Made by a program: the position numbers and the translations under genes. From Gnetum montanum (taxonomy: Eukaryota > Plantae > Gnetophyta): DNA of 64,000 nucleotides. How positions within the stretch are numbered: the first letter of the stretch is position 1; each line of letters starts with the position of its first letter. Location: positions 74,855 through 138,854 of the forward strand of contig MNCI01000838.1 of the NCBI GenBank assembly GCA_015680685.1. Direction: 5' to 3'. Shown here in pieces: positions 831 through 41,872 of the stretch. The notes beneath the pieces were generated by a model that had not been told where the DNA came from, made no database searches, and saw nothing but the letters and a program-made list of their open reading frames with translations.

Positions 831-1065
831 TACGCATCGTGCGGTGTAGATCAGTTGCCTAAACGTTTCCTTGGGAACCCTACTGGACATAAAGCATCTG
901 ATTGCCAATTGACTTGCCTATCTTATGGTAGTCTTGCACACACTTTGTACCCTATCATGCACTAGCATAAATGTGACACCCTCTTGTAGTTGTTTACACA
1001 TCGTGTAGTAGAGATCGGTCACTTTGACGATTCCTCAGGAACCCTGTGAGAGATAAAGCCTTTTT
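831..1065 (+). repeat. 5' leader repeats of element A (two units visible)
   Basis: Recurring catcgtg..gtagatc.gt...ttcct..ggaaccc...ataaagc; homologous to 37680-38130 and 41960-42620. Confidence 0.7.
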
Positions 1066-1164
1066 TTATTGGTTTTCAATTTCTTTGCTCCTCTCATTCA
1101 CAAAGCTATTTAGCTTTCCAATTTCTTTGCCTTTTTCCTATTTGCAAAACTATTTGGCTTAACG

Positions 1165-4100
1165 ATGGCTTCCTCAAGAATCGTTGCTAATACCTTCAAC
1201 GTTGAGGTTCCTTTCACAATTCAAGGCACCACTGGTGCCAAACAACCACTCAACCTGATGCTAGAAATGCGTCAATCCCTCTGAATACAAAAATTGGGTC
1301 CTAAAGGCTTGGCCCAACAACAAGAGTGTTATAACTTCATCTGTGCAAAGGTGCAGGAAAATCTACCCTTGGATGTGCATGAATTCAAAGACAAACATAG
1401 CTTCGAGTTTTCTTACTGCGACAAGAAGGAATTCATTCCTACTCCTGATGCTTCCATCCTATTGACACAGAGAAATCAGTGGCATATAGACCAACTGATC
1501 TAGTTGGCTAGACTTAGGGAATAGCAGGACACAACGTCTAACCATGATGATGCCTTCTAGGATGGACAGGAGGAACTTGATCCCTAATCTAACAGGGAAG
1601 TTCAAACCAACCCCATTACCGTCCCTCCTATCCAGTCTATCTAGACCCATCCGTTATCTGCTACCACTCCCTTCATAATCACATCAGCACCTTCAAAACC
1701 CACAATTACATCTATGATGGGTAGCCATGTTAACCCCTCAACATATCAATGACCTTTTTCACATGTTTCACCCATTTCATTTGCTATCACTATCCCTTTG
1801 CAAATTGTTTAGCAGTCCATTCCCATATCGCATCATGTGCCAATCATGGCTACCCTGCCACATGTACACACCATACCGACTTCATAGCCATACATAGCTT
1901 TCACTTCCATTCCTGCATTTACATCTATCCCACCATCAGTAGTGGGTGCAAGTCCATCTATGTGGTGGACCCCATTCACTACTCCCCCCGCTATGCTACC
2001 ATCGTAGACATCTCACAACATTTGCCAACAAACCCAAAAAATCCCACAAATGGTACAACCTAGTGTGGGACTATGGTTTATCCCGTTGGCTATGCAAACA
2101 ACCTATCCCACAGCCCAACTAATGGTTGCTGCCCTAACAACACCACCTTCTGGGTGGTGGATGATGCAAGCAACACCATCTGTGGGGGCCATCCCAATGG
2201 TACCACTACTGGGTCATGTCGTTGCCCCCGCCACTCCACAAATGAGAGCTACCTCAGTAGTTCCCCAGCCATCTATGTCATCCCAGGGTCTGGACCAAGC
2301 ATTCTAGCTCATCTAGACCATCACTAAGGAAATAAAATGCCTCAAGGCTATTGGGTCTGACACAGTACAAGTCATGAACTTTTATTAGGATGACCCCATC
2401 AGCCCTGCCATACCCACACAGATCCTACCTCTAGGGATGTCCCTCCCCCACTTCATGAAATACAATGGGAAGGGGGATCCCAATGCCCATCTTGTTATCT
2501 TTAGGTTTGAATCAGTTTTGTTACAACAATGGCCACACATGATTATTCATGTATTCAATATGTCCCTAATTGGAAGGGCTTTAGATTGGTACCGCACACT
2601 ACCATGCTCATCTATTTGAACTCTGGAAGAGCTTCTGACCCAATTCATGACACGCTTCAAGTATAACTTGAAGCTAGAAATTGCACTGGACCAATTGATG
2701 AGCATGAAGTAGGAACCTCTGGAGCCGGTCCAAAAGTTCATCTAGTGTTGGAGTGCAACCCTTAATGAAATTTGCGAGTCCATCGTTGAGGCCCATTTGC
2801 TAGCCATCTTTAAGGGCTCAGTAAATGACTTCATCAAGTCTAAACTATATTATCTCACTCCTCGAACTCTTATTCAGGCCTTCTCTTAGACTAAGAGCAT
2901 ACAAGATGCGGTCGAGGCAAGCAAAGACCTAGCCTACATTACCTACAAGTACACCTTCACAAAGAAGAATAAGGGTAAGGCTGCAACTACCATAGTGGCT
3001 ACCATGGCAAGTGAAGCCAAGCCCAAACCCAGTAACAATGGTAACAAGAGTAGCAAGAAATCGGCTGCACTTGCAGCTAGTCCCATGCCTAAGTAAGGCC
3101 ATGCATTGCAACCTGCCATACCCATGCCTAAGACATCTGCACAACCCAAACCAAACTTTGAGCATAAAGATTGCTCAAAGTACACCCTGCTTCCCCTCAA
3201 GCCTTCAGATCTTCTGAAGCAGCTACTTGCAGCGAGGTACATCCAGCACAAGTAGATGTCAGAAGAGGAAATCAGGAGATACCAACACTATTGCAAGCTC
3301 CTTAGAAATCCTTCTTTGGCCTTGCCCAATGAGCCCCTCATTCCTAAGGGTTTCAAGCTAGACAAGTTTTTTGACTATCACCAACAGTGTGGTCACAACA
3401 CGGATTACTGTCTAGCATTGTAGGATGACATCCAAATACTGATTGATCATGGAAAACTAGTTTTGGATAAAAGCAACCCAATACGCCCTAAGAACCAACC
3501 TATGCATGTCTACATAGACCCCATCAACACCAACAATGTTGGTTATGTCATCAATGCCATTGGTATTGATAGTGATCCTAGTCCATCCTAGCAGTCGTTC
3601 ATGGTCTGTGTGCCTCAGGGTAGTGCACCAGCACCGCCAACAATTGGCCAAAGCCCGTAGCAACCATTTATCCTAAGGATTCCTTCCCGAGCATCCATCC
3701 CCATGCCACTTGTTAGCAAAACCATGCTACCCTACTCATTAACACCCTTAGCTCTATTTTTCATCAAGGGGCCAACTCCTTCAATAGCCCCGACCCCACG
3801 CAAGACAACCACACAATCTTCTCATCCTAAGGAATGAGAAGCATGTTTCACAAGTGAGACGACATCGAAGGGAAGTACCACCTCAAGTGTTCCCAAGCCT
3901 ACATCATCACCTCCTACATCCATGCCCTCATCACCAAGGAGGGATGTTGATACAACAAAGCATTCCACACCACCCTGCCAAAAGGGATCTGAACTTAGAT
4001 CCGAAACTACCCCTCCTCAGGAAATTTATTTTTTGGAAAAAATAAAAGAGGAGAAACGTGGTAAATAGGGAGATGGCCAAGACCTCTTGGATTCCCTCAC

Positions 4101-4983
4101 CCAGGTCAAATAAGCTCTAAAACAAAAAAACACTACACTGAGCTTGTACGACCTAATCATGACATCTGTCCCACACCATGAGGCTCTGATCTACATGTTG
4201 ACGATGATTCCAGTTGACAAGGACATGCTAGTGGAAGAGGAAGTAATCCATTCGGTCCTACTTCCTTCTCCCCCTATAGAGCCAGAGCCATCTCAATTGA
4301 CTTTCTATGACAACTCCATTAGGGAAGATCCTGAAAGGGGTCAGGTGACTACAACATCCTTATTCATCATAATTTGGGTTAGCCAATACCAAATATGAAG
4401 GGTACACATTGATAATGGGGCTGCCACAAATATCATCCCCTTCCCTATTATGGACAAGTTGGGATTGGTCAACCAGATCAAACCCACAACCATGTCATGC
4501 TTGAAGTTGTTCAATGGGGCATGCGTCCTGGTGAAGGGAACCATCCAGATAGACTTCGTGGTAGGGGACCAGTTCCCCACAAACACAATGTTCATCATGG
4601 TTGAGGCGATGCCCAGTTTTAACCTGATCTTGGGGAGGCCATGGTTAGCACAACTTAGGGCTATCTCCTCACCTATACACTAGGAGATCCATCTTCAGTA
4701 CGCAGGTAGGGAGGTGGTGATTCGTGGTGATGATGTAGCGACATAAGCAATCAACAATGTAGGCATAGAACAAGGCTCAAAGGTCATAACCTCTAAGAAT
4801 GAAGCACTTTCCCCTATGCACACTAGCCATCTAGCAGAGGAGTCAGCTCAGCAAGCCGGTTCTCAACACGAAAGCAGATGAACAGAGTTGCCCTTCCAAG
4901 CGGAAGGCAATGATGCAGATGAAAGCCCTGGCAGAGCACCTTAACCTTATGCTTCCCTCAACCCATGATGGGTTAAGAAGTAG
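1165..4983 (+). pseudogene. gag: gag-protease ORF of element A (many in-frame stops)
   Basis: KYNGKGDPNAHL and MSLIGRALDWY capsid motifs; degenerate C-x2-H-x4-H-x4-C knuckle near 3370-3410; protease HIDNGAATN...FNLILGRPWL. Confidence 0.9.
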
Positions 4984-5121
4984 CTACGTGTAGTGTAACA
5001 ACCCTACTGCTTCCATCCCAGTTGCCACTACTTTATGCATTTACTGCCTTTCTTGTTTTACGCACATATACATCTCTACTAAGCATCGCTTTCTCTTATC
5101 ACATTTTTTCTTAAATCACTA

Positions 5122-5236
5122 TGGCCCAAAATGGCCCAAAACTATGACACACGCAATGGCCTGAAATGGCCAAAAACTAGCTATGGCTCAAAATGGCCTA
5201 AAACTATCCATGGCCTGAAATGGCCTAAAACTAGCA
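5122..5236 (+). repeat. Tandem array of ggcc-N6-ggcc-taaaacta(g) units after PR
   Basis: Four to five units such as tggcctgaaatggcctaaaactag; same array at 33470-33680, 51025-51380 and 58856-58992. Confidence 0.9.
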
Positions 5237-5402
5237 TAAAAGAGCAAAATTTTAGCATGACATTTAGCACATACACAATGCATAAGTTAGCATGGAATCA
5301 ATTCATCTCTTTATTCAAAATTTTTCTCTCTTAGACAATGTTTGCAAAAATTTTGCAAAACTTCAACAAAAACTCAAAAATTTCAAAAAAAATCCCATGC
5401 TA

Positions 5403-8400
5403 TCATGGGTTGTTTCTACCTGCATCATCCGCTTCTACATCGCCTTCCACTGCACCATCCCCTACTACCTCTTCATTCCTTCTAGTCATAGGCCTCACAA
5501 CTTCATCTGAAACCTACATTATAAGAGATAAAGTAGTCAGCTAGGGTAACACATGCAAGCTACAATAGAGAATAAGCATTAATATGATAGACAACGACTG
5601 ACATGAGAAGGACCCACGTCTGTCTCGAAGGATATATGGGGTAAATTGAGCCCAAGGTAGCGCCAGACCACCTCTTCCATGATGTCCACCCAACGCCTAA
5701 TGCTAGGTTCAGCATCTATTGTAGCCTTCTCCTTTTTAACGACCATCTATCTCAACGATCCTGAAGAGAAGGAGGCAGTTGTGGTCTCACTTGTGGGAAG
5801 GTTCACTTCCCATTCAGAAGACTCCATAACCTTTACCTACTTTTTGAACTTTTCATAAACTTTGAAAATGCCAATGGCATCTACAAATGCCTTATAGGTA
5901 AATGCTTCCATAGAAGCATCCCTATACAATCTACGATAGGAGGCACAACCCAGTTTATACATATGTTTATGGTTCTTCTGGGAATACCCCCATTCGTAAA
6001 CCCTGGCACTGAAATCCTTCCAATCCTGACATTTCTGGAGTAGCAAGTCCATTTTCATTTGCTACTCTATTATTTCATGGGTGGCTTCATTGTTCATATG
6101 CACAGATATCCAAAATTTGATGTAATCTACCATAGCCATGCACTAATCCTCGTTATTGGTATCACGAGCTATGAGGAATTCATTCCTCGACTTGAGGTCT
6201 TCCACCTTGATGCTCAACTTAGCCTTCTTTCTCTCAGCCTTTTGGACCTATTTCCATAAGTCTTTGTTGACATGCTTGTACTCCCACAAGGAGCAGGTCG
6301 AGTGCAAAGCACATTGGCTGACCTCATCATATGCACAACGAGGCACCTCAGTCACCTCAGGTGGGAATGTAGGTATGACACCGAACTTCAAAGGCCATGT
6401 TGGATCCCATTTGAGTCAAGAGGCTATCACAACATAAAGAGCATATCATTCACATTAGCATATAAAGTAACAAACTCAGAACTCTAGCATAGCAGCATGA
6501 GAGCATCCAACGCTACTACTTACCCATGTTAGGGTCGATTCGCTGAAGATAGCTGACCATGTCATCAACAACCCCCTACATAAATGTAAACTTATCAGGG
6601 GTCTAGAACCATGATTCCATTATAGGTGGTCCCAGAACCTTAGAAATAGTGTCTATCATGTAATTAAATGAGTCAACAATTATTGAAATGGACTATGACA
6701 AGGCACACACATTACCGAACTCACCAACAACTAGTTATGGCTCCCCTTCTTGCTGATGCAAAATAATGGTGGTGGCCCTAGCAGAAGTCCCTCCTAGGTC
6801 TAAGCGGGCCTCTTCTTCATTTGCTAATTCCTTCCCTTTTAAGGAACCAACATCCTTCTTATTAATGGGAGACTCTTCTTTGTCTCCAAAAATGTCTTCC
6901 TCATTAATAGGAGGATTTTGTCTAATGACAAGAGCCCCTACCTTAGCGGTAGGAGCTCCTTTCCTCTTGATTGAGGCCCTCTCTTCCAAGACTGGGGCCT
7001 CCATGTCTTTATTCATCACCTCCATCTTAGGAGCTGACACCTCTTCGTTGCCTTCTTCTTCTTCCTCTTCTTCCTCTAGCAGTTAGAAAACATGTTTGCA
7101 TTACCTTAAAATAGGTCAGCATAACATAGATTCTACGCTATGCTACACTATCTAGCATAGCACAGCGTAGCAGGCATTAACAAAGTAGGTGAAGAAATAA
7201 ACATGAATGAAAGTTTTTACCAATGGAGGATTGCATCCTCTGTAGTTTAAGCTACAGTTTCCATCCTTCCTCTTCCTCTGCATGAAGGGTTCCCTTAGCT
7301 AAAGCAAGCCTCTTCTGCTGCAACTTGATGATCATAGTTTTGGCAATGAGACACTTCCCCTATCATACACTACCAACAGTAGTAAGGGGCATCTCTCCTA
7401 CACTATCTTGGCCATGAAAGTTGTGGGCCACCCGATCCTTAGTCGTCACAGAGAATGACTCCCTAATTATTTCTAGGGGATCTTAGGCTGGGGTGGTCCT
7501 AAGGACCTGGCAGATCCATGGTTTGGAAATTTGGTTATGAATCTACAATATCTAGATCCCTTTCTCATAGACCACCATAATGAATGTTGAAACTAGACTC
7601 CTGCTTCTTATGGAGCCCCACAATTTTAGCCTGCAAGCCTATACATAGAAACCTAGCCCAGTTGTAGCAAGCCCCCTCTTCCATAACCTCGCGCATCACC
7701 CAGGCCTACTCAATTCCAAGGACATTCCTTTGGGAAAGTAGTTGGGGGAAGGCACGAGAATGGAAGATGGGGTAAACTTCTTTAGCAGGTCCTACTTTGA
7801 CCTTCTTCATAGGGATCCCCCTCTGCTCTTTAGCAATCCCTATCCACTCCATAATGTCATCCTTTTGAAGGGTTAACTCCTTCTTGGACTTTGACCCAAT
7901 AAGGATTCCATCGGCAGGGATATCAAAAATGTCCACAAATAGCTAGTCATTGATGTCAATGATCACCTGCACACTGTGAATGCGTGTGTGGAAGTAGTCT
8001 TCCTTGTCAAAAAAGGAGACCACCAAGGAGAGAATCTCAATAGCAGGAATTTTTAGGTTCGAGGTCAAGAACAAATATGGCAACCTGGCTTTTTGGAGAT
8101 TCTAGACCAAGGAATCTGAGGCTTTGCTATGTATCTAACACTGGCTCACAACTACTTTCCTATATTTGAAGTAGATGTTCACCTGTTGATTCTTGATGGT
8201 TACCACTGTCACCTCCTGGGGCTTCTTTTCCCCTGCAAAAATTTACATAAAAATGGTTAGCATAAGAACACAAAAATACAAAAAAAAATAGCAAAGACAC
8301 TTCAGCATGTCACATCCACTCCTTAGCTTACTAGGTTTATACAGCAATGGGAATTATGGGAGGGTGACCAAAATGTTTTCCAGGGGGATCAATTTCAAGG

Positions 8401-9803
8401 GTGCCCATCCCTCATCCAACGAACTAGACTCCTTACACATGTTGTAGAGGATGGGATATCATTCTGGATAGGTGGGGTACTTACCCTTACATTAACATAT
8501 AACACCTATGTGGATGTTCTCAGCAGAACAGAACTCCCACAAGGCCATCTCCGCTATGACCAAGGAATCCATATTACCGTGAAGGCCCTGGTCATTGATT
8601 AAAAACTTGGTAACAAAAACACATAATCAACATTTGGCCAAGCATAGCGACTATAGCATAGTATAGCAGAAATGACACTACAGAACTCACCTGCCAGCAT
8701 AGTAGACGGTTTCTGGTGGGTTTTGAAAGCATGTTCCCATATGACATGCAACAAACAATGTGTTGTAAGGATGGTAGCAGCTGTACTCAGGCATCTCCTA
8801 GATCCAATCCAAATGCCTCAAACCTTGGGGGCATGGGTCAGATCCCTCCCCCTACCCACTACCGACTACACCATCTCTAAGATGCCTTAGAATGCCCCAA
8901 GTTGCCCCAAGAAACAAAGTTTCTAGTATAATGGTTGCTACCTCCTCCTCTAAGTGTGACCAAATGATCACACTGAAGCATTGGAGGAGGAATTATAGGA
9001 ACTTCTGTGCTCCTATCTTGAACCAGATTGCCCGATCTCCCACACGTGTATGAGGAGGAGGAACATTGGCTATGGGTTTGTTCATGTAGCATAGGACCCC
9101 CACAATGTCTAGAACAATTAGAATTGGCCTAATCACTATCCTGCACAATAGAATAGCGAACGTTAGCATCACATTCAAAGTGCAACAGACACGTAGTGTA
9201 ACAAAATCTAGCATTTTAGCATCTAACGTAAACATAACGCTCTTTTTATACATAGCATAGAAAAAATGTTGAAGCAATAGCATAGTAAAGATAACCTAGT
9301 GTAGCAACAGAGTGATTAGCCCTAATCAAAGCAAATAGCACTACACCCTAACGAAACACGTGTCATACTGTCACATCACATGTAGCCAAACCCTCTTGGG
9401 GCTTCTACGCTACGCCACATGAAAGCCAAGTAGCTTAAACCATCCAAACCTCTATGGTAACGATAGCCATAACAGTGCTAGTTTAGGCGACCTTGCATGC
9501 AACAATAGTGTAGTGTTTGTGCATCCGCCATAGCCTAAACGGTAACAACGACGATGTAAAGGCCGAAACAATGATAACAAAATGATAGGAAATACAAACA
9601 TCCAAAATAAAGTCGTAGGAATAGGGATAGGACACAAAAGTGATAACAGAAGCATAAGGAAATAGAGGAAGCATAGCAGCCTACCGGGTTAACGGCGTCT
9701 CCTCCCAAGTCACGACACGTGCATGTGTCACGCACCCTAGGGATTCCTTCACCTCATTGACCTTTGCGAGCACCAAGTGTGTGCATTCTTTCTTTGGAGC
9801 CAT
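5403..9803 (-). pseudogene. Antisense multi-exon accessory gene of element A (FCP1/NIF-like domain plus unknown domains)
   Basis: ATG at 9803 (MAPK..HLVLAKV); splice sites at the same positions as copies 28928-33304 and 59072-63465; exons conserved while introns diverge. Confidence 0.85.
8691..9140 (-). pseudogene. Exon 3 of the antisense gene: FCP1/NIF-like HAD-fold domain (copy A)
   Basis: 450 nt between tgtgcAG and GTgagt; reads ILIVLDIVGVLC...IWFKIGAQKFL.FLLQCFSVIIWS...LRHLDWI...YNTLFV...FQNP. Confidence 0.75.
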
Positions 9804-9954
9804 CATTTTGCTTGCTAACTCTTCCTTGCTACTATGCAAAAAATCTCCTTACTCTCTATTAGCACAATCATCCTATGCTCCACAATCGCTTTGTGTTCTG
9901 AATGTGGGCTCTACACGGTTACGGCGATGACTAGTTTACCAGGGCTTAATCCCT

Positions 9955-9961
9955 TTTTATA
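9955..9961 (-). promoter_or_regulatory. TATA-like box of the antisense gene (copy A)
   Basis: TATAAAA about 150 nt upstream of the ATG; cATAAATA at the equivalent position in copies B (28770-28777) and C (63614-63621). Confidence 0.55.
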
Positions 9962-10164
9962 GCCATAATGGTAGAAAAGGGAAACTTTCCTTTCTCTCTC
10001 TCCATTTAATGTGGGGTGTACCATGCAGTGTAGCATGCTCACCATGACACCATAGCACTGTTGGCAATTAAAATAGGTAGATCTAGGCGAAAGATCTTGG
10101 CACACCTCGAGCTAGTCGTTTACTTTCTTGAAAAGCATAAAAAATATATATTTTTAGTTACCAG

Positions 10165-10500
10165 TATGGAAAGACCTTAAACTAGCTACCCCAACATAGC
10201 AACAATTTTAGCAGTCTAGAAAGACCTTAAACTAGTAATCTTAGTGTAGCTATAATTGTGCTAGTTCAAAAAGACCTTAAACTAGTAATCTTAGCATAGT
10301 TACAATTGTGCTGGTCTGAAAAGAACTTAAACTAGCAATCATGATCTTACACGCGTTCGTAATCTGCAATGACACTAAACTAGCAGTCTCACATTTTCAG
10401 TGATTTTATGTTTTTACAATAGCAGCTTTCTGTATTGCATACTAGTAGTTTTGCATTTTACTTCTGAGCAGTTCGAAATGACACTAAACTAGCAGCCTTG
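10165..10500 (+). repeat. Tandem array of (g)gtc-N6-gacc-ttaaactag units before pol
   Basis: aaagaccttaaactag repeated at roughly 45-50 nt spacing; homologous to 28310-28590. Confidence 0.88.
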
Positions 10501-10709
10501 CATTTACACATTGGCAGTTTTGCATCTTTAGCAGTTTTGCATCTTTGAATCTTAGTGATCCCCCACAACTCTGAGCTGGTGGGTTTTGATCTTTGTCTCA
10601 CACTTTACCAATTACACATTATTACTATTATGCAAATTTTTTCCATTATATGTGATTACTGCGAACAAGTGCCACCTAAACAGACTTTTATTTCATTCTG
10701 GCAGGTCGA

Positions 10710-13700
10710 ATGAAAATCTATCATGACCTCTCTACATCTTTAGCCTTAGTAGGTCCACATGGTAAGCTTGCAAGATAATTGAACCCAGACCTAATCAACT
10801 AGGAGTCAACCACAGCTAGCACCATAGCATCCTTAGAAACATCCCCATACTAGCCCAAGTATCTGGTCCGAACTCTAGATTTAGAGGCCAAGGATGTAAC
10901 CGAGGACCCTCTCATCAAGATGCATGTGACCACATCAAAAGGGGAAGTAAAAACCTTAAAACTTAGTTCCCTCTTAGATGCGAAGACATACAAATATGTA
11001 GCAAAAATTCTACAAGACAACATTAAAGTCTTCGCATGGTCATACAACAACATCCCGAGTTTGGATCCGAGGTTGATACAGCACATCATTGTCTTAGACC
11101 CGCACATGAAGGCAGTCAAGTAGAAGGCCTACAAGGTTAAGCTAGAAATTACACTATCCATAAGGGATGAAATCACCAAGCTATACCAAGCTAGTTTCAT
11201 CTGTGCAGTTGATTATTCGGAATGGGTTTCCAACATTGTTATGGTTTCTAAGAAAACAGGAGGAATACAGATCTGTATAGACTTCCAAGATTTGAACAAA
11301 GCAACGATCAAGGATAATTTCCAACTTCTAAGCATTGATCAACTCATCAATACTATAATAGGTCATGCTCTATTATCCTTCATGGATGGTTTCTCTAGCT
11401 ACAACCAAATTCGCATTAGCCTAGAGCACCAGCTAACAACAACCTTCATGACCCCATGGGGTACCTTTTGTTACACCATGATGCCTTTCGGGCTCAAGAA
11501 TGCTGGAGAAACCTACCAATGAGCCATGACTTACATCTTCAGTGACTACATCCTAGAAATGCTAAATGACTACGTGGATGATATAACGGTCAAGTCCAAA
11601 GAAGCTGCTGATCACCCACGTGATCTAGGGGTAGTCCTCAAGTATTTTCAAATGCATGATTTGTGCCTCAATCCTAAGAAGTGTGTCTTTGGGGAGAAAA
11701 TAGGACGCATGTTAGGGTTTGTAGTATCGGAGGCTGAAATACGTGTGGATCCTGACAAAGTTAAGGCCATCATCAACCTAGCACCTCCTATGAACCTTAA
11801 GAAAGTGCGCAGTTTGCAAGGTAGGGTACAATTCATTCAAAGGTTTATTGCAAAGTTAATTGACAAGTTACACCCCATGCAACATATTCTAAAGAAAGGG
11901 GTTAACTTTGAATGGACAACTCAATGTCAACAAGCCTTTGATGACTTGAAGGAAGAGCTTTCACACCTCCCAACTATGCACCCGCCACAAAGGGATAAGC
12001 CTTTCTTCATCTACCTTACCACCTCTGACACATCTATCATAGCACTGCTATGTTAGAAAAAAGATGATGGATCTGAGATACTAGTATATTATCTAAGTCA
12101 TGCATTAATAGTGCACGAGGAATTCCCTTGCCTTAGTGTTTGCACTGAAAAATGGAGGCATTACCTATTTTGTAGTACAATCAATATTATTTGCAAAAGC
12201 AACATACTCTGGGCTATCATCAAAAACCTGTATGAAAGTAGCAGGATAGCTAGATGGAAAGCAATAACCACAGAGTTTGACTTACACTATGTGAGCTAGT
12301 CATTAATGAAGGGTCAGGCCATAGCAATGCAACTTACGGCCTCACCCATCGATGACTAAGCAACCATAGATCTTGAATTTCCAGACAAGCACGTTAGCAC
12401 TATTAATGACATCCCATCGCATCTCAAAGCTATCTTGCACTTCGATGGCATCTCGACCGCATGGGGAGGTAGTGCAACTACCATCATTATGTTCCCCTTT
12501 GGGGAAATGCACCTGTTTTCTTATCGTTTTATGTTCCCCTGTACGAACAACGTGGCAGAGTATGAGGGGCTACTCAGAGGCCTCTCAGCTGCCCAAACAT
12601 TACGCATACAACACATGGCGATTTGTGGAGATTCATAACTAGTTATGAATCAAATGACCGGGGTTCACACTTGCAAAGCTATGTAGCTACAACCCTATTG
12701 TGATCTAGTAAAGAGCTTGCTCAAATAGTTTGTAACTACAGATGTGCAACATGTGCCATGCAATGAAAACACAATAGCAAATTCCTTAGCCACCCTAGAA
12801 TTAAGCATCCCACCACACTCGTTTGCAAATTTTCCTACCTCGATTGTCGAATGTACTGGGCCTATCACTCAGGTAGGACACGTGGCCTCTATCAATGCTG
12901 CAGACACCCAGGAATGGTACGCCAACATTAAAGCCTACTTGCAACATGGAAAACCCCCAGGAGGATTGACATCTGGACAAAGAGATGCGATCTTAAATCA
13001 TGCCCAACAATATATGCTCATGGGAGATAACACCATGTGCAGACACTCCTATGAAGGGATAGTGTTGGCATGCATGGGTGGGGAGCAGGTGTAAAAGGTA
13101 GTTAATGAAGTGCATGAGAGACTATGCGGCAGACACATAGCACCTAGGGCTATGGCCAAGAAAATCAGATGCCTAGGGTACTATTGGTCCCACATGGAGC
13201 GTGACTACCTATTGAAAGTCAAGATGTGCAACACATGCCAAAGGCATGCAAACCTCTTACACGTTGCACCTACGAAGCTGCACCCAATGCAGATCACATG
13301 GACTTTCCAGTGATGGGGACAAGACATCATAGGACCTATCACATCTAAGTCCTCTGTAGGGAATAGCTTCATCATCATCACCACTGAGTACTTTACCAAA
13401 TGGGTGGAAGCTATTTTCCTAAGGAAGAAGACATCCCAACAGGTTTGCCACTTCATCCTGGATAACATTGTAATGAGGTTTGGGCTTTTGATGACTATTG
13501 TAACCGACAATGGGCCACAATTCAGTAGTATGGAAACTTGAACCTTATGCAGCAATCTTGGCATCAGGAAATCATTCTCCTCCCCATATTATCGGTAGGT
13601 GAATGGGCAGGCGGAGGCTACAAATAAGACCATCATCAACTTGCTGAAGAGAATGCTCAACAACAGCAAGAGGCGGTGTCATGAGAAAATCTTCTATGTT

Positions 13701-13782
13701 CTATGGGCCTATAGGACAACATGTAGAACTGTGATGAGTAAGACTCCTTACAGTCTTATTTATGGATCTGAAGTTTTGTTGC
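10710..13782 (+). pseudogene. pol: pol of element A: RT, RNase H, additional RNase H, integrase (truncated)
   Basis: SFMDGFSSYNQI, MPFGLKNAG, YVDD; FEWT..CQQAF; HERLCGRH..C..CQ; TDNGPQF, NGQAEATNK. Confidence 0.95.
12435..12810 (+). pseudogene. Additional (archaeal/plant-type) RNase H domain between RH and INT
   Basis: HFDG...CTNNVAEYEGL...GDS...HVP.NEN..A.SLA, the diagnostic aRH of Tat-clade elements. Confidence 0.9.
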
Positions 13783-15366
13783 TATAGCAAACGAAAATGT
13801 CAGTGGCTAAAAAACACCGAGGGGTCAGCAGCCACAACAGTCTTAACCCTATACTTGTAGAAGGGCCATGCTAGATGGAGCAGATACAGGATGCCTTGAA
13901 TGGTCTGGTTGATTAGAAAAGGACCTAGTCGATGTCTATGTAGCCTTTTGCAATGTGTGGTTTGAAAGCGAAAATGAAAGCGTGAAGTAATGCTTCAATG
14001 CAACTAAAACAGAGAATAGTGTAAAATGTAGAAATAGTAGGAAACAAAGTGAAATGTAGTTAGAAAAATGCATTGCCCTGAAGCTACAAGTTTGCTCTAT
14101 CAAGCTGGATACAGTCAATTGCACAGCATTACAGAGTGTAGAGATCCCGAGAGTAACCAAGATATGTAGAGAAAAGATGGTTGTGCACTTGGGTGCAAAC
14201 TCAGGAGCTGACAATGTGAAAATTATACCAACGTGGTAGAAAGGGGGCAAAACAAAATGCTAGCTAAGAATGCTAACTGTTTACAATGTCAAATAGAAAG
14301 CTGACAGTGCTCAATGTTACAATGCTAACTTTCTCATTTGTTACAGAATGTCCAAGACCAAACCCTTGAGCATTGCTGATCAGGATATTTATAGGGCTAA
14401 GGACATGTGAAAGGGGTGGTTTGGATGCCACATGCCTTGGGCTGATGTTGACTTGTCTGTGCTGCACATGCCTGCATGACTGCTAGGTCTGCATGACTAT
14501 TGTAATGCAAGCCTGCCATGCCATAACTATGAGCCTAGCATGTTGTAATTACACTGTCAACATCTAGAGACGTGTGTTAATGGTCTAATTAGGTGAAGTG
14601 CATTGATGTTTCACAACCACCTACATGCTTTCCTATGCTTTGTAGTGTAGCATGTTTGGCGTAGCATAACATCTTGTCACATGTTCTGCTATATGTGGGC
14701 TGTATGTTTGCTACACTATGCTATGCTACATGGTGTAGTGTAGTGTAGTGACTGACCTTAGTCACAAAAAATTTTCCAATCTGCAAACTTTTCTCCCTGC
14801 ATTGCAAAAAAATTTCCAATCTTGCCCTTTGAATCACCTTCTGTCACCTCCGCAGAATTGCTACCCCTCACTACACCATGTAGCTCAACGTAGCATAGCA
14901 GTAGACATGGTCCGCTTCTTTCTGACGGAAAGAGACACTGCTGAAGGACTTGCAGTCAGGTAAGAGGACCAACTGTGTAGCTTTTGTTACACTATGCTAT
15001 GTTGCATAGCACAACATAGCGTAGCACTTGGTTCTACAATTGTTTTCTGAAGCTTGCTATGCTACATAGCGAGGTGTAGCATAGTGTAGCAGACTTCGTG
15101 ACTTAAAAAACTTGCCGAACTGTTTTGTGCATCCTAAGAACTATTGTCAACTTTGTGTGTTGCTTTTGAGCAGGCTATCAACTGGGCATACTACTTGGGT
15201 GGACAGGTAGGATGATCCGTAGAGCCTATTTACACCTAAAGTAGAAAATTTGCTGAACTGGCCAACCTAAATTTAGAGTGTTCTCCTCCCAAAGAACTAT
15301 CGTAGCACTATGTGAATTTCAAGGCCTGGTGAAGTAAGAATGCCTTTAAATTTTTGGGGTGTTTCA
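13783..15366 (-). mobile_element. 3' LTR of element H inserted into the integrase of A
   Basis: Minus strand begins TGAAACACC; homologous to LTRs at 23577-25085, 38636-40223 and 40224-41866; TATAAATA near 14385-14392; the A INT reading stops at YGSEVLL. Confidence 0.88.
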
Positions 15367-15608: not shown

Positions 15609-16793
15609 TGAAACACCACAAAAATTTTGAGCTTGGTACTTGTCTGACAAGAAGTAGGTCCCTGGGACCCACGGACAACCATGGCTACATTTGGTGTCGC
15701 ACATTGCAACTTTGGGGATCAAAATGCTTAATTTTCACTAAGTATGCAGTACTAGCATATACACCCAGTGTATATGCCCAGCATCCATAGCATATACACC
15801 TGACATCAACAGCGTATACGCCCAGCGTATACATCCAGCGTAGACATCCAACTTACACACCTGACGTACACTTCACATGTACGCTCGGTGGTACGACCAA
15901 TGTTTATGCCTGACATGGAATCTTCAAAGACAGAATGAACATAGCACCGAAGAGCAAGAATTGAAGCAAGTCGGCAACCATCAGTGTATACGCCTGGTGT
16001 ATACGCCCAGCCATTATCGGCGTATACGCTCAGCGTGTATGCCCAACGTCCACAGCATCTACGCCCAGCATATCCAGCGTATACGCCCAGAGTCTACACC
16101 CACCTGATACAGCGTATACGCTCAGCAGATGTAATATGTTGTACACTTGTAAATTTTATGCCCTTTTTGCACCCGATCAACATCCACATGTGGCCCAACC
16201 CGAGTCTAGCGTAACAACCGATATAAAAACCTCACTTTTCCACTTGTACCAGGATGGTTGGCAAAAATCCCAGAGCATACCAGAGAACATTTACGTTGCA
16301 CACCAGAGCTAAAACCCTTTTACGCTGGATAGTCCTGTACACTGGGCACACAGTCTTTAAGCTCTGCCTACAGTCCGAAATAGCCGAGTCATCCCTGCAT
16401 CCATCAGGGCTTTTCATCCACCTTGTGTTCCATCACAACTACGTTAGACCGGTGCACTGTACTTTCATTCTATAATATCATTGTTTACAGTTTACGCTGA
16501 TTTCTTACATGTGTTCTATTTACGCTCGTTTACATTTATGCCCTGTTCACATCTGTTACGCTGTTTACGCTCTCGTTTATGCCCCTTATGTCGTTTACGC
16601 ATAACCCAGCATATAGCACTTCGGTGTACATTCGGGGAAATCCTTGTCTGATCTGCGTGTGGACCACCCAAGGTACTCTACCTTCGTCTATTCCAGCTCA
16701 TCCTCAAGCGAAGGTAGGGTCTTCCGTGCGTGTCCCGTGGTCCATCGATCTCTGTTTCCTTCTAGCTAGAGACTGACGATTTCGGTCGGTACA
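15609..16793 (+). repeat. 5' LTR of element G
   Basis: TGAAACACC...GGTACA; direct repeat of 22378-23576. Confidence 0.95.
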
Positions 16794-16798
16794 GAAAA

Positions 16799-22377: not shown

Positions 22378-23576
22378 TGAAACACCACAAAAATTTTGAG
22401 CTTGGTACTTGTCCGACAAGAAGCAGGTCCCTGGGACCCACGGACAGCCACGGCTACATTTGGTGTTGCACATTGCAACTTTGGGGATCAAAATGCTTAA
22501 TTTACACTAAGTATGCAGTACCAGCGTATACGCCTAGCATCCACAGCGTCTACGCCCATCGCATACGCTTGACATCAATAGCGTATACGCCCAGTGTATA
22601 CGCCCAGCATAGACATCCAACTTACATGCCCGACGTACACTTCACATGTATGCTCGGTGGGTACGGCCAATGTTTACGCCTGACATGGAATCTCCAAAGA
22701 CAGAATGAAAACAGCACCGAAGAGCAAGAATTGAAGCAAGTCAATAACCATCAGCGTATACGCCTGGCGTATATGCCCAGCCATTGTCAGCGTATACGCT
22801 CAGTGTGTATGCCCAGCGTCCACAGCATCTACGCCCAGCATATCTAGCGTATACACCCAGAGTCTACGCCCACCTGATACAGCATATACGCTCAGCGTAT
22901 ACACTCAGCAGATGTAATATGTTATACACTTGTAAATTTTACACCCTTTTTGCACCTGGTCAACATCCACGTGTCGCCCAACCCGAGTCTAGTGTAACAA
23001 CTGGTATAGAAATCCCACTTTTCCACTTGTACCAGGACGGTTGGCAAAAATCCTAGAGCATACTAGAGAACATTTATCTTACGCACCAGAGCTAAAACCC
23101 TTTTACACTAGACAGTCTTGTATGCTGGGCACACAGTCTCTACACTCCGCCTACAGTCTGAAACAGCCGAGTCATCCCTACATCCACCGGGGCTTTTTGT
23201 CCGCCTTGTGTTCCATCACAACTGCGTTAGACCGGTGCACTATACTTTCATTCTATAATATCATTGTTTATAGTTTATGTTGATTTCTTACATGTGTTCT
23301 GTTTACGCTTGTTTACATTTACACCCTGTTCGCATCTGTTACGCTGTTTACGCTCTCGTTTATGCCCGTTACGCCATTTACGCATAACCCAGCGTATAGC
23401 ACTTTGGCATACGTTTGGGGAAATCCTTGTCTAATTCGTGTGTGGACCACCTAAGGTACTCTACCTTTGTGCATTCCAGCTCACCCTTAGATGAAGGTAG
23501 GGTCTTCTGTGCACGTCCTGCGATCCCATGATCTTTATTTCCTTCCAGCCGGAGACCGACAATTTCAGGCGGTACA
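22378..23576 (+). repeat. 3' LTR of element G
   Basis: Direct repeat of 15609-16793, preceded by a purine-rich tract. Confidence 0.95.
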
Positions 23577-25085
23577 GGGGGCACCCTGAATGGTTTGGTC
23601 GATCAAACAAGGACTTAATTGACATCTATATAGCCTTTTGCAACATATAATTTGAAAATAGGGTGAGAATGAAAAGTAATGCTTGAAAGTAAATAAATCA
23701 AAAAATAATGCAACACACAAAAATAAGCAAGAAACAAAGTAAAATGCAGTTAGAAAAATGCATCACTCTGAAGCTACAAGTTTTCTCTGTCAGGGTGGAT
23801 ACAGTCAATTGCACAGTATGATGGAGTGCAGAGATACCAAGAGTAACCAAGACATGTATAGCAAGGCAGGTTATGTGCTTGGGCATGAACTTAGGTGCTA
23901 ACAATGTGTGGATTCTACCAAGGTGGTAGAAGGGGACAAAACAAAATGTCAGTTGAGAATGCTAACTGTTTGCAGTGTCAAACAAAAAGCTTACACAATG
24001 CTAGATGTTACAACGTGCTAGGAGGAGAACTTGAGTGCTAGAGAGAGGAAAATTTGGGAACTTGAAAAGAATTTGAACCCTTTGTATGTTGCTCGTCGGG
24101 GTATTTATAGGTCCAAGGGCTCATGAAAGGGACAATTTAGACACCACGTGTCCTGGGCCTTCGTTGACTTACTTGTGCTGCACGTGCCAGTATGACTATT
24201 GGACGTGCATGACTGTTGTGACTTTGAGTCTACTATGCTATAACTATGAGCCTGCCATGTTGTAATTGCACCATCAACATCTGGAGACGTGTGCCAATGG
24301 TCTAGTTAGGTGAAGTGCATTGATGTCACCAACCACCCATATGCTTTGCTATGTGTTGTAGCATAGCATGCTTGGCGTAGCGTAGCACGTTGTCTTGTGT
24401 TTTGCTACACATATGCTACATATTTGCTACACTATGTTATGCTATGTAGCTTGGCGTAGCATAGTGTCTAGCATTAATTGTGAAAACCTAGCCAATCTGC
24501 AAACCTTTCTTCCTACACTACGGAACTTGCAACCTTGCTGGCCTTGCCCTTCGAGCTCCCTTCTATCTCTTCCGCAAGATTGCTATGCCTCACTGCATCA
24601 TGTAGCTCAGCATAGTGTAGTAGTAGACATAGTCTACCACTTCCTAATGGAAAGGGACATTGTTGAAGGACTTGAAGTTGTGCAATGAAACTAGATGTAT
24701 GGTTATTGTTATGTTATGCTACGCTACGTAGCATAGCGTAGCATGGCACTTTGCTTTGAAAATGTTTTTTGAAGCTTACTATGATACATAGCAGGGCGTA
24801 GCATAGTGTAGCAGACTTCATGCCTTAGAAAAGTTACCGAACTATTTCATGCATCCAGAATGCTGCTACCAACTCCATGCATCATTTTTGAGCAGGCTAT
24901 CGGCTGGGCAGGCTACTTGGATGGACAAGAAGGACGATCCGTAAAGCCTATTCATGCCCAAAGTAGAAAATTTGCCAAACTGGTTGGCCTAAACTTAGAG
25001 CATTCTCCTCCCAAAGAACCTCCATAATGCTGCACAAATTGCAATGACTGGTGAAGCGAGAATGACCTCGCATTTATTGGGGGAT
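23577..25085 (-). repeat. Main part of the 3' LTR of element B (remainder at 15552-15608)
   Basis: 23580-23885 is closely similar to the B 5' LTR at 38335-38635; TATAAATA near 24102-24109. Confidence 0.85.
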
Positions 25086-27825
25086 AGCTGAGATGTCATC
25101 TTCCTCAAGGAGATAGCTTCCACCCAATAGGTAAAGTACTCTATGGTGGTGATAATGAAACTATGCCTTGTGGAGGACTTAGGTGTGATAGGCTCTATGA
25201 GGTCTAGTCCCCATCGTTGGAAGGGCCACATGGTTTGTGTTGGGTGTAGGTCTATAGGTGCTATGTGTATGAGATTTGCATATCTCTAGCATGTGTCACA
25301 CATCTTAACTTTTGAAAGGTATTCACACTCCATGTGGAGCCAGTAGTATCCTAGGCATTTGATTTTTGCAGCCATAGCCCTAGGTGCTATGTGTCCACTA
25401 CAAAGCCCCTCATGCACTTCATTAACTACCTTCTACGCCTGCTCTCCACCCACACATGCTAGCAATATCCTATTGTAGGAACATCAACACAGGGAGTTAT
25501 TTCCCATGAGCATGTATTGCTAGGCATGCTTACGGATTGCATCTCTCTGGGCAGATGTCAATCCACCTAGGGGTTCGCCATGCTATAGGTAAGTTTTAAT
25601 ATTGGCATACCACTCCTAGGTATTTGAGCACTGACAGAGGCCACGTGTTCTACTTGAATGATAGGCTCTGCACATTTGATAACTGAAGTTGGTAGATTTA
25701 CCAAGGAGTGTGATGGAATGTTTAACGCAAGGGTAGCTAAGGAATCTACTATGGTGTTCTCGTTGCGTGGCATGTGTTGCACATCTATGGTCGCAAACTA
25801 CTTAAGCAAGGTTTTTTCTAGGTCATAGTAGCACTGCAAGTGCGTAGCCTTGCAGGCGTAGACTTCGGTGATTTGATTCACAACTAGTTGTGAATCTCCC
25901 TAGATTACCAAGTGTTGTATGTGCAGTGCTTGGGCAGTTAAGAGGCCTCTGAGAAACCCTTCATATTATGCCATATTGTTGGTACATGGGAATGCAAAAT
26001 GATAAGAAAATGGATGCATTTTACCAGAAGGGAACGTGATGATGGCAGCTACCCCTCATGTGGTTGATGTGCCTTTGAAATGTAAAGTGGCTTTGAGATG
26101 TGATGGGACAAATTTGACATTGCTAATGTGCTCATCCAAGAATTTGGGATCTATGGTTGCCTGATCGTCAACCAACGAGGCTGTGAGTTGGGTCGCTATG
26201 GCTTGACCCTTCATCAACGATTAAATTACATAGTGTAAATCGAAGTCTGTGGTTATTTCCTTCCATTAGGCTATCCTGCTACTTTTGTATAGGTTGTTAG
26301 TGATAGCCTGAAGTATATTGCTTTTTCAAATGATGTTGGTTGTACTGCGGAATAGGTAGTGCCTCCACTTTTTTAGTGCAAACACTAAGACAAGGTAATT
26401 CCTCTCCATTTCGTTGTATTTCACCTCATGTGCTATTAGTGCATGGCTTAGATAATACATCGGTATCTCAGAACCGTCATCTTGTTTCTGACATAGCAAT
26501 GCTATGATAGATGTGTCAGAGGTCACCAGGTAGATGAAGAAGGGCTTGTCCCTTCATGGAGAATGCATAGTTTGGAGGTGTGAAAGCTCCTTCTTCAAGT
26601 CGTCAAAGGCTTGTTGACATTAGGTTGTCCACTCAAAGTTAACCCCCTTCTTTAGAAGATGCTACATGAGGTGTAAATTATCAGTCAACCTTTCAAACTA
26701 TAATTGTACTCTACCTTGCAAACCACGTAGCTCCTTAAGTTTTGTAGAAGGTGCCAGGTTGATGATGGCCTTGACTTTGTTAGGGTCCACCTGTATTCTA
26801 GCCTCTGATACTATGAACCCTAACATGCATCCGATTTTCACCTTGAAGATGCACTTCTTAGGATTGAGGCATAGGTCATGCATTTGGCAACACTTGAGGA
26901 CTATTCCTAGGCTGCATGGGTAATCAGCTACCTCCTTGGACTTGACGGCTATATCATCCATGTAGTCATTTAATGTTTCTAGGATATAGTCACTAAAGAT
27001 GTAGGTCATGGCTCGCTGGTAGGTTGCTCCAGCATTCTTGAGCCCGAAAGGCATCATGATATAGCAGAAGCTACCCCATGGGGTCATGAAGGTTATTGAT
27101 AGCTGGTGCTCTAGGTTAATGTAGATTTGGTTATATCCAGAGAAACCATCCATGAAGGATAGTAGAGCATGACCAACCATGGTTTCAATGAGCTGATCAA
27201 TGCTTGGGTGTGGGAAGTTGTCCTTGATCGTTGCCTTGTTCATGTCCTAGAAGTCTATATAGATCCGTATTCCTCCCATTTTCTTCAAAACCATAATAAT
27301 GTTGAACACCCACTCTAAGTAGCCAACCGTGTGGATGAAACCAGCTTGGTATAGCTTGGTGATTTCATCCCTCATAGCTAGTGCAATTTTTGGCTTAACT
27401 TTGCAAGTCTTCTACTTGATTACCTTCATGCACAGGTCTAGGACAATGTTGTGCTAAATCACCTACAAATATAGACCCGAAATATTATTGTACAACCATG
27501 TGAAGGCATTAATATTATCTTTCAGGATCTTGGCTATGTTGTTGTCCATTCGTGCATCCAGGAGGGAGCTAAGGTTCAATGTTTTTATCTTCCCCTTAGA
27601 CATGGTGATAGGCGTCTCGATGAGAGGGTCCTCAGTCACATCCCTAGCCTCTAAATCTAGGGATTTAACTAGATGATCGAGCCATTCTGGGAATGCTTCT
27701 AAGGTTGCTATGGTGCTAGCTGTGGCCAACCCCCAGTCGATCATGTTGGGGTTCAACTGTCTCATGAGCTTACCCTATGGACCTGCTAATGTTAAGGGCA
27801 TGGAGAGGTCGCGATGGATTTCCAT
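25086..27825 (-). pseudogene. pol: pol of element B (RT-RH-aRH-partial INT)
   Basis: FMDGFSGYNQI, MPFGLKNAGATYQR, YMDD; WPFQRWGLDLI; INT ends abruptly at the LTR. Confidence 0.95.
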
Positions 27826-28309
27826 CTCTTGCTCGACCTACCAACATGAGACAAAATCCTGGTTAAGAGGCATCTGTTGGCAGAGATTTTTTATAACAAA
27901 AATTTACAAAGTAGTGATGAGATGCAACTTGCAAAGTGTGATGATGTAAAGATTAAAAGTTTTCCATTTTAAGGTCATGGAAGACTACCAAGGTATGAGA
28001 GTGTAGAATTGCTAAAAATGTAAAACTATCAATGTAAAAGTGCAAAGCTATGAAACCGTTAATATGCAAATGTCAATCTACTAATTTAGTGTCATTTTAG
28101 ACTACCAGATTGTAACATGCAAAATTTTATCATGCAGAATGATGGTATGCAAAACAAGAAATGGCAGGTACGAGAAATGCAAAACTGTTAAGACAAACAT
28201 GTGGACTGCTAACATGAAACTGCCAGAAATTGTGACACTGCCAATGTGAAAGTGTGAAACTATGGGAAGATGCAAAACCACCCATGTAATTATGAACTAC
28301 AAATGTAAT

Positions 28310-31900: not shown

Positions 31901-33304
31901 TTCTGGCTAGGCCTCCGCCATCAAAGAGTGACCGCAACTAGATGTTGGTGAGTTTGGCAATATGTCTGTCTTGTCGTAGTCCATTTTGGTCATTGCTAAT
32001 GTGTTTGGGGTATGCGACAGATGCTACTGTTGATGCCACAGGGACCACTCCAGTTCACACCGGGCCTTGGGTAGGAAATCCCTAACAAATTCATGTTTAT
32101 GTAGGGGATTGTTGATGACATGATTAAGCACCTTCAGCAGGTGAACCGTAAATCAGATCAGTAGTAGTGTTATCCGTTCTCGTGATGCTATGCTAAAGTT
32201 TCTTGCGTTTTCTACTTGTGCTATGCTAATATGACTAGTGTATTCTTTGTATCATGGTATCCTCTCAACTCAAATGGGATCCAACATGACCTTTGAAAGT
32301 TGGTGTTGTGTCCACATTCCCACCGGAAGTGATCGAGGTGTCTCATCGTGCATACGATGAGGTTTGCAAATGTGCTTTGCACTCGGTGTGCTCCCTATGG
32401 GAGTGCAAGCATACCAACGAGCTATGGAAATGAGCCCAAAAGGCATAACAAAGGGAGGCTGACCTTAGGACTGAGGTGGAGGACCTTAAGTTAAGGAATG
32501 AGTTCCTTCTATCCTACAAAACTAACAACGAGGACTGGCACACCATAGTGGTAGACCACGCCAGGTTTTGGATAGTTGCGCACTAAAATGTTGAGACTAC
32601 CCATGAACTAATAGAGCAGTGGATGCAAATGGACCTACTAGACTAGAAGTGTCAAGATCTAAAAGACCTTAGTGCCAAAATTTTCAAATGGGGGTAGACC
32701 CAAAGAAACCATAAGCATATGTATAAATAGGAAAATGCCACCCATCGCAAGTTATATGAAGATGCTGTTGTGGAGGTATTTATGTATGAAGTGTTCATAA
32801 ATTCCATTGACGCTTCTGAGGCTTACACCATGTTGAAAGGGTAGGTCAAGGTGACGAGAGCTCCTAACCCAAAGGTGACCCTTTGCATAGGAGAGGTTAC
32901 GGTTGTCCCCTATGCTTTGGGGCCACCACGGTGGACACCCATCGAAAGGGGGAGAGCTGCCACAGTAGATTCTACACCAGACAGAAGGCATTGGGTAGAT
33001 ATCATGACATAGGAGGTCTAGCGTCATCTCAGGCTTGGCTTAGGCTAGATACCTTTCGAGATAGATGCAGGACCTCCTCAGGTTAGTTTCATTCTACTGT
33101 GTTAATGTTTATGTGCTATTGTAGTTTGTGTTTGTTGGCCTTATTGACCACTTTACCCCTACAATGCAAGCTTCAAGTGATGGTGCTGCACTCATAGAGG
33201 GAGGGAATGAAGAGCCAGCGAGGGACAAAGCAGCGGAAGACAATGTGAAGGGAGATGATGTAAGAACGAATGGTGAAGATGATGCAACCAGAAATGACCC
33301 ATGA
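28928..33304 (+). pseudogene. Antisense multi-exon accessory gene of element B
   Basis: Predicted exons: 28928-29037, ~29200-29375 (uncertain), 29560-30008, 30092-30370, 30465-31508, 31639-31947, 32021-32156, 32261-33081, 33170-33304; several sites are mutated GT>AT or AG>AA but intact in A or C. Confidence 0.85.
29560..30008 (+). pseudogene. Exon 3: FCP1/NIF-like domain (copy B, frameshifted)
   Basis: RLIVLEVRGVLCH...FRPGT.DFLKFLLDHFSMIIWSS...LRCLAWIWEM...LNTLFL...FQN. Confidence 0.75.
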
Positions 33305-41866: not shown

Positions 41867-41872
41867 GTTTTC

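Follow-up and report, generated by a model that had tools for sequence, protein, structure and literature searches.

Evidence for an intron-containing antisense gene between gag-protease and pol in old copies of a Tat-type Ty3/gypsy family of Gnetum montanum

What is the conserved region of about 4.4 kb that lies, on the opposite strand, between the protease and the reverse transcriptase (RT) of retrotransposons with long terminal repeats (LTRs) in Gnetum montanum? We addressed this question in a window of 64 kb (GenBank assembly GCA_015680685.1, contig MNCI01000838.1, positions 74,855 to 138,854 of the forward strand), and all coordinates below are positions within this window. An earlier reading of the letters alone, here called the sequence-only reading, had proposed a spliced antisense gene of about nine exons that belongs to a Gypsy/Tat family. 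In our analysis it is probable, at roughly 0.8, that a large Tat-type family, represented by old copies in the three elements named A, B and C, carried an antisense multi-exon accessory gene between gag-protease (gag-PR) and pol.

Self-BLAST placed element A at about 835-13800 on the plus strand and element B at about 38100-25089 on the minus strand. The two are collinear across about 12 kb, with 74-78% identity in the best-aligned segments. Element C (plus strand) starts at about 41300; its gag region is split by a nested element, D, leaving the parts at about 41300-44552 and 56604-64000, and it runs off the window before its pol. Each of the three contains a homologous block of about 4.4 kb, and here self-BLAST and MAFFT agree with what had been read from the sequence. 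Block A (5403-9803, minus strand) is antisense to element A. Block B (28928-33304, plus strand) is antisense to element B and collinear with block A, and its gene reaches to 33309 when the stops are included. Block C (59072-63465, minus strand) contains a gene at 59151-63465 with 14 of 14 splice dinucleotides intact. The block follows gag-PR in A, B and C. In A and B it also stands before RT, RNase H, a second, archaeal-type RNase H (aRH) and integrase, and thus between gag-PR and pol.

For the gene structure, the three blocks were aligned with MAFFT in antisense orientation, the alignment was read column by column and exons were placed by conserved splice motifs. Exon numbering follows the sequence-only reading for exons 3 and 5. 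Eight exons and a candidate micro-exon of 14 nt were found on the strand opposite the element, with conserved segments alternating with gappy ones. In the following, coordinates in A are on the minus strand and lengths are given in the order A/B/C. Exon 1 (A 9803-9685, B 28928-29037, C 63465-63356; 119/110/110 nt) opens with a conserved ATG (MAPK...) and has no stop in any copy. Its only length difference is a frame-keeping indel of 9 nt, its donor reads GT/AT/GT, and the ratio of nonsynonymous to synonymous substitution rates (dN/dS) is about 0.3. It is followed by the long intron 1 (A 9141-9684; 544/522/500 nt), which is T-rich and has many indels of any length. A conserved block within this intron holds a CACGTG core resembling a G-box (A 9352-9364, B 29358-29370), partly kept in C. 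Exon 3 (A 9140-8691, B 29560-30008, C 62855-62406; 450/449/450 nt) is flanked by AG and GT, has a dN/dS of 0.18-0.41 and encodes a NIF/FCP1-like sequence of the HAD type. The lengths previously read for exons 1 and 3 were exact, the longer exon 1 being that of A. After an intron of 78-84 nt the domain continues into exon 4 (A 8606-8332, B 30092-30370, C 62327-62047; 275/279/281 nt), with a conserved stretch ...D.EL/LA.AQLAL.EF.

Exon 5 (A 8232-7221, B 30465-31508, C 61993-60959; 1012/1044/1035 nt, about 348 codons) is the best conserved part and shows the strongest codon periodicity, with a dN/dS of 0.27-0.31; it contains three 9-nt indels, and A carries a deletion of 41 nt. Exon 6 (A 7075-6725, B 31639-31947, C 60844-60515; 351/309/330 nt) is bounded by AG and GTGAG in all three copies. 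Its three different lengths are each a multiple of 3, the frame being preserved by indels that measure 27, 15 and 21 nt. In all copies AG precedes the candidate micro-exon (A 6639-6652, B 32021-32034, C 60403-60416); the dinucleotide after it is GT in A and C and GC in B, and its flanking introns measure 63-98 nt. Exon 7 (A 6575-6524, B 32105-32156, C 60333-60282) is 52 nt long in every copy, has no indel and encodes G-x-VDDM...LQ; the acceptor is TAG|G throughout and the donor GT/AT/GT. Exon 8 (A 6423-5603, B 32261-33081, C 60186-59367; 821/821/820 nt) encodes a Cys/His-rich stretch and then a coiled-coil-like region, dN/dS being 0.15-0.39 over its first 580 nt and 0.28-0.45 over what remains. 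Exon 9 (A 5513-5404, B 33170-33303, C 59284-59151; 110/134/134 nt) encodes an acidic tail, is in frame with exon 8 and differs by a frame-keeping indel of 24 nt. It ends in a double stop, TGA TAG, common to A (5398-5403) and B (to 33309). Downstream of the stop there is a T-run, followed by 27-nt tandem repeats. At the other end, about 155 nt upstream of the ATG, a TATA-like box ATAAA(A/T)A is conserved in all three copies within a conserved block (A 9954-9962 on the minus strand, with the box at 9960; B 28771; C 63620). This box may be the promoter of the antisense gene.

The gaps between the exons had been described as beginning with GT and ending with AG at the same positions. Homologous columns hold the canonical dinucleotide in 35 of 42 cases: 18 of the 21 donors read GT and 17 of the 21 acceptors read AG. 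Six of the seven misses fall in B, five being G-to-A changes relative to the other copies, and the seventh is the exon 4 acceptor of A; such a pattern fits the decay of once-functional sites. The extended contexts are AG|GTGAGT at donors and TGCAG|G at acceptors, the latter preceded by a CTRAY-like branch motif. Apart from the first intron of about 520 nt, the gaps are 63-181 nt long, with one of 53 nt in C after a deletion. On the gene strand they contain 40% T and 37-39% GC, and the exons 24-26% T and 45-48% GC. Plant introns are expected to be U-rich and to exceed about 60 nt in length. By their ends, U-richness and length the gaps are predicted to be plant U2-type spliceosomal introns.

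Indels separate the two kinds of segment clearly. Across the 3265 exon columns there are 19 indels, and 14 have a length divisible by 3; across the 1270 intron columns there are 54, of which 11 are divisible by 3, at a sevenfold higher density (Fisher p of 5e-5 for multiples of 3 and 3e-16 for indel density). The sequence-only reading had expected exons to be better conserved than introns. This holds for indels, composition and codon pattern, and identity in aligned columns is just slightly higher in exons (0.61-0.67) than in introns (0.57-0.64). As a separate observation, the hexamer ATGCTA, often as GCTATGCTA, is nearly confined to the introns, which hold 10 of its 11 occurrences in A, 12 of its 13 in B and both of its 2 in C. 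With the reverse complement TAGCAT present only 2-3 times, the motif is strand-specific and could be an intronic splicing signal or binding site.

The reading frame was followed by phase arithmetic on natural exon lengths only. Exon 1 ends 2 nt into a codon and exon 3 provides the third nucleotide, giving a direct in-frame join. Exon 4, taken at its length of 281 nt in C, joins both exon 3 (2-nt overhang) and exon 5 in frame, so that exons 3, 4, 5 and 6 are in phase; exons 7, 8 and 9 form a second in-phase group. From exon 6 to exon 7 the candidate 14-nt micro-exon would restore the frame. With it, the summed lengths give about 1,071 codons, close to the 1,100-1,200 amino acids that had been estimated.

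Did these frames encode a protein under selection? In exons 3, 5 and 8, read antisense, substitutions by codon position follow the order 3 > 1 > 2, and the best BLOSUM score across copies falls on a single frame per block. In the predicted frame, dN/dS (Nei-Gojobori) is 0.15-0.41 in nearly every block and 0.33-0.54 in exon 6, compared with 0.6-1.5 in the other two frames of the same strand. A dN/dS below 1, which had been put forward as a check of the gene, is found here in the natural copies. Synonymous sites are near saturation (dS 1-2; pS 0.54-0.64). Pooled over the gene, the uncorrected pN/pS is 0.46-0.48 (bootstrap 0.40-0.54), the lowest of the six frames; four of the remaining frames give 0.72-0.98. 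The coding strand is settled by the order of codon positions together with the splice sites, the U-rich introns, the conserved ATG and the match to NIF. Hence the block evolved under protein-level purifying selection.

The relation between block and element was examined by comparing their divergence. Exon identity is 0.67 for A-B, 0.61 for A-C and 0.63 for B-C; for gag-PR the values are 0.73, 0.66 and 0.67, respectively. The branching order is the same for both, with A and B closer together than either is to C, and in three lineages with gag-PR identities of 66-73% the block keeps the same place and orientation. Thus the block co-diverged with the element. Element D (44552-56604, minus strand), a complete LTR element nested in the gag region of C, is a relative that has no block. 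It is the farthest of the four in gag-PR (0.56-0.61), and from its protease to the start of its RT there is about 1.3 kb (50467-52224, minus strand) with no antisense block. Where A has 5.6 kb, D has about 560 nt; the protease, the 27-nt repeats and the pol start are common to both. The block was accordingly either gained in the ancestor of A, B and C or lost in D. The gene had been called a fixed part of the family; this is correct for the A/B/C clade only. The lack of a block in D, in a window rich in nested elements, could be taken to mean that the block is itself an independent transposable element nested at the same spot. We consider this extremely unlikely. Such an element would be expected to show its own ends, and the block ends in the window have no terminal inverted repeats and no long or LTR-like direct repeats. 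Moreover, position and orientation are identical in three lineages and the divergence runs parallel to that of gag-PR.

We then asked what the protein might be. A Pfam search matched NIF/FCP1 (PF03031) to exon 3 of C (62432-62746) with 22.9 bits against a cut-off of 21.8 (E 7e-5). The match spans model positions 37-80, including the motif region ...FL..L...+E+v+wS/T.S. The exon 3 context shows L-V/I-V-L before the position of the nucleophile, and FL..LL..F.+.+WS.S. At the DxDxT position itself the residues are L-D-I-V-G-V in A, L-E-V-R-G-V in B and L-H-L-E-G-V in C. No copy has the second Asp and the first is not conserved, which indicates a phosphatase-like fold without the nucleophile pair. 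A search for homologues of the matching piece found no protein within its length window, and AlphaFold2 modelled the fragment with a mean predicted local distance difference test (pLDDT) score of 49.5, too low for a structure search. The exon 5 pieces gave no Pfam match; for one of them (B 30806-31183) there were 0 matches at E up to 0.001 among 1.84 billion representatives and no usable Atlas match. The plant mobile domain (PMD; PF10536) did not match at E up to 0.1-1 in one exon 5 piece of A, two of B and one piece of C that lies mostly within exon 5, all short and decayed. Pfam Transposase_28, the family of the antisense ORF that Retand (Tat lineage VI) carries in a long region from pol to the 3' LTR, had no match in the block pieces. 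Exon 6 encodes an acidic N-terminus with a Glu run, followed by a less acidic tail. For the exon 8 piece only weak matches to coiled-coil families were obtained, and the Atlas leads were low-score coiled-coil or bZIP-like proteins.

Several results weigh against the interpretation as a spliced antisense gene. No intact gene exists among the three copies, which have 26 (A), 35 (B) and 26 (C) in-frame stops in addition to frameshifts; A, B and C are all dead copies. One of the stops, a TAG in exon 8, is common to A and B (B 32842-32844) and reads CAG in C. As the same-frame dN/dS of 0.28-0.45 persists downstream of it, we read this TAG as a secondary C-to-T change and not as the original stop; the change possibly occurred at a CHG methylation site. 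The exon 2 of the sequence-only reading was not found between exons 1 and 3, and the in-frame continuity it had claimed from exon 3 to exon 8 breaks between exons 6 and 7, which are off by 1 nt without the unproven micro-exon. In the opposite-strand frame that shares third positions, pN/pS is 0.50-0.55, so that this measure alone barely separates the strands. The NIF assignment depends on one fragment and on motifs: ten other, shorter pieces of exons 3 and 4 (seven from A and B, three from C) had no Pfam match. Searched against the PDB, the NIF piece had no phmmer match, and a five-row profile gave a chance peptidase match only and no NIF structure. Finally, reads of four RNA runs from the same species were mapped to copy C at 80% likeness, and no splice-junction reads were found at a depth of about 1, with 51-123 reads per run, mostly less than 90% alike. 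These reads are too few to support expression and splicing or to count as evidence against them. In all four runs, reads pile up at 60807-60847, the GAA-rich start of exon 6, and continue into unrelated sequence on both sides; the pile-ups come from other transcripts with a similar low-complexity stretch.

The absent junction reads and the phase conflict between exons 6 and 7 would also be explained if the block consisted of separate short antisense open reading frames (ORFs) or non-coding RNA segments, with incidental GT and AG and no splicing. The near-equal identity of introns and exons in aligned columns points the same way, and the conserved, intron-enriched ATGCTA suggests additional constraints. 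Nevertheless, we judge this explanation very unlikely. It does not account for 35 of 42 canonical dinucleotides in extended consensus, for strand-specific U-richness limited to the gaps, for the CTRAY branch-point-like motifs before acceptors or for the agreement of phases at six junctions. In addition, a conserved ATG opens exon 1 only; exon 7 has an internal conserved ATG, and the other blocks have none at their start. From the sequence features, a transcript was presumably made and spliced.

A further explanation accepts the exons but not their function: a piece of a host gene with its introns was captured once in reverse and has since been a useless passenger, conserved by shared descent only. 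LTR retrotransposons are known to capture genes (PMC7264820), the NIF-type domain is one of host type, D manages without the block, and all copies in the window are dead. A passenger would, however, drift neutrally between lineages. What we see is a dN/dS of 0.15-0.4, exon indels that preserve the frame, and splice sites, ATG and TATA box still present in lineages with differences at over half of their synonymous sites (pS 0.54-0.64). We therefore hold a passenger to be unlikely and return to an accessory gene that was maintained for its protein.

Which element carried this gene? In A, pol extends over 11124-13538 on the plus strand, where Pfam recognised RVT_1 (11124-12053), RT_RNaseH (12057-12296), RVT_3 (12360-12635) and Integrase_H2C2 with rve (13095-13538). 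RVT_3 represents the aRH and matched with 22.7 bits at a cut-off of 21.6, between RT_RNaseH and the integrase. Retrotrans_gag was matched in sense orientation in D (53442-53984), and the region is homologous in A and B. The protease was recognised by motif alone, as Pfam found no match: its core in A (4399-4680, plus strand) contains D-N-G-A-A-T and ILGRPWL, is homologous in B, C and D and lies upstream of the block. With aRH in pol and the gypsy domain order, the host element belongs to the Tat clade within Ty3/gypsy (OTA superclade), as the sequence-only reading had supposed. In flowering plants, the Tat lineages Ogre and Retand have this organisation, with an aRH between RNase H and integrase and a protease joined to gag (PMC6317226, PMC4408406). 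The closest RT relatives are just 57% identical, and one cluster of them comes from Ginkgo.

A sense PMD ORF 5' of gag, which is a trait of Ogre, was not seen. Homology between copies begins about 300 nt before the gag frame (A 835 compared with 1114), which leaves little room for it, and sense pieces 5' of the gag core (A 1734-2616, B 36191-36397) had no Pfam match in a scan that began at A 1734 and whose sensitivity is lowered by decay. In front of pol, a sense acceptor-like site (T-rich...CAG|G) followed by an ATG that opens the pol frame is conserved in A (10696-10712, plus strand), B (about 27817-27845) and the block-free D (about 50570-50596). This suggests a possible Ogre-like spliced junction of gag-PR and pol: spacer, conserved acceptor-like site and ATG are seen in A, B and D. 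If such sense splicing took place, the whole antisense gene would sit within a sense-strand intron.

Further features accompany the host element. The 27-nt tandem repeats (GGCC...AAAATGGCC units; 5119-5234, plus strand) separate gag-PR from the antisense gene's 3' end and are also present in B, C and D. Tandem repeats of 50 nt (TAAACTAG units; 10170-10340, plus strand) lie between the putative antisense promoter and pol in A and B. The block is thus bracketed by two unlike repeat arrays. In the protease region an in-frame TAG is common to A (4681-4683), B (34044-34046) and C (58446-58448), and D has CAG. The frame stays open past this TAG (C 58449-58628), which is either an inherited, read-through stop or a recurrent CAG-to-TAG change.

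The window itself has about 43% GC and no tRNA genes and is filled by nested, decayed Ty3/gypsy copies, as seen by self-BLAST. D is flanked by LTRs of 1.1 kb (44552-45651 and 55504-56604) that are 88% identical. Three copies of a 1.4-kb sequence, all in one orientation, lie at 13894-15297, 23584-25019 and 38334-39953. Of these, the second and third stand on either side of B and are possibly its LTRs. The first and second enclose a further element with direct repeats of 1.2 kb (15609-16794 and 22378-23577; 87% identical). The integrase of B is cut off at about 25089, and in their 3' portions A and B are truncated or covered by other elements. LTR ends and a primer-binding site were sought for A and B, and neither could be fixed.

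Based on these data, we propose the following for the active family. The long spacer between gag-PR and pol would have carried, on the opposite strand, a protein-coding accessory gene with its own TATA promoter facing away from pol, an ATG, nine exons (one being the 14-nt candidate) and short U-rich GT-AG introns. The predicted protein would consist, in order, of a NIF/FCP1-like HAD domain without the DxDxT aspartates, a domain of about 350 residues, an acidic stretch, a Cys/His-rich and coiled-coil-like part and an acidic tail. Antisense to the genomic RNA, the introns would be no splice substrate there and would be copied by reverse transcription in each cycle. The sequence-only reading had invoked the same principle, which is the standard logic of retrotransposition reporters (PMC12786077). 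The protein would help the element; our best guess is a non-catalytic nuclear regulator of transcription or silencing. A more specific picture is tentative and rather doubtful. Here, a nine-exon gene with its own promoter inside a gag-PR/pol intron would encode a catalytically dead protein resembling phosphatases of the RNA polymerase II C-terminal domain (CTD), combined with a large transposon-type domain and a coiled coil, which would act on RNA polymerase II or on host silencing to favour the element. With the same reserve, such a protein might be likened to the anti-silencing factors of DNA transposons, as their retrotransposon counterpart, and seen as a mirror of host silencing modules that combine PMD and pseudo-phosphatase.

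How does this gene compare with known systems? Tat-type elements are known to carry antisense extra ORFs (eORFs) downstream of pol, before the 3' LTR, among them Grande gene23, RIRE2, Retand TRP28, and PMD or PMD-coiled-coil ORFs in Tat III and V (PMC7264820, PMC11963269, PMC4408406). Like these, the gene described here would encode an accessory protein opposite gag-pol of a Tat-type plant Ty3/gypsy element and is conserved across family members. The Grande eORF has a promoter of its own, which the TATA-like box suggests for our gene as well, and the large domain and C-terminal coiled coil of Tat eORFs resemble exons 5 and 8. In contrast to the Tat eORFs, which are single ORFs located between pol and the 3' LTR or, in Ogre, 5' of gag, this gene lies in the protease-RT spacer and has about eight predicted spliceosomal introns. 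It also differs by its NIF/FCP1-like start, and Pfam PMD and Transposase_28 were not detected in its short, decayed pieces.

With Ogre (Tat lineage IV), the elements share a gag-PR uncoupled from pol by a non-coding spacer, the aRH between RNase H and integrase, a very large size and the acceptor-like site before pol (PMC6317226, PMC4408406). In Ogre, an intron averaging 274 bp is spliced between gag-PR and pol (PMC6317226). Whereas that spacer contains no gene, the one described here measures about 5.6 kb and holds a complete antisense gene with its putative promoter; the 5' sense PMD ORF of Ogre was not seen with it. HBZ and APH-2 of HTLV are likewise antisense, spliced genes of regulatory proteins with their own promoters in reverse-transcribing elements (PMC11963269), splicing being a prediction in our case. 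HBZ, with its single intron, begins in the 3' LTR and overlaps genes of the sense strand, whereas our gene has many introns, a putative internal promoter and no overlap with sense coding sequence, and the proteins are unrelated. Exon 3 resembles the CTD phosphatase-like HAD proteins of the NIF/FCP1/SCP type (PF03031) by its profile match. It differs from them in lacking the DxDxT nucleophile motif in three copies, in being transposon-encoded and in having no close relative found.

The sequence-only reading knew of no description of this architecture, and the literature searched, which left out subscription papers, contained no description either of an antisense gene with introns in the protease-RT interval or of a NIF-like domain in a retrotransposon. 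Relative to the Tat/Retand antisense ORFs and the Ogre intron, the position, the introns and the NIF-like domain are new. A 2020 review urged attention to antisense and spliced transcripts of such elements (PMC7264820). There is also a practical side for annotation: blocks of this kind can end up annotated as host genes, and the introns in them can be misread as a sign of cellular origin.

Extra genes in plant retrotransposons are common and unexplained, and have been described as single ORFs beside gag-pol. The gene in A, B and C offers a concrete protein for tests of effects on transcription or silencing, and A, B and C compared with D provide a natural comparison of elements with and without it. 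If our reading is correct, antisense placement would allow retrotransposons to carry and preserve full intron-containing genes.

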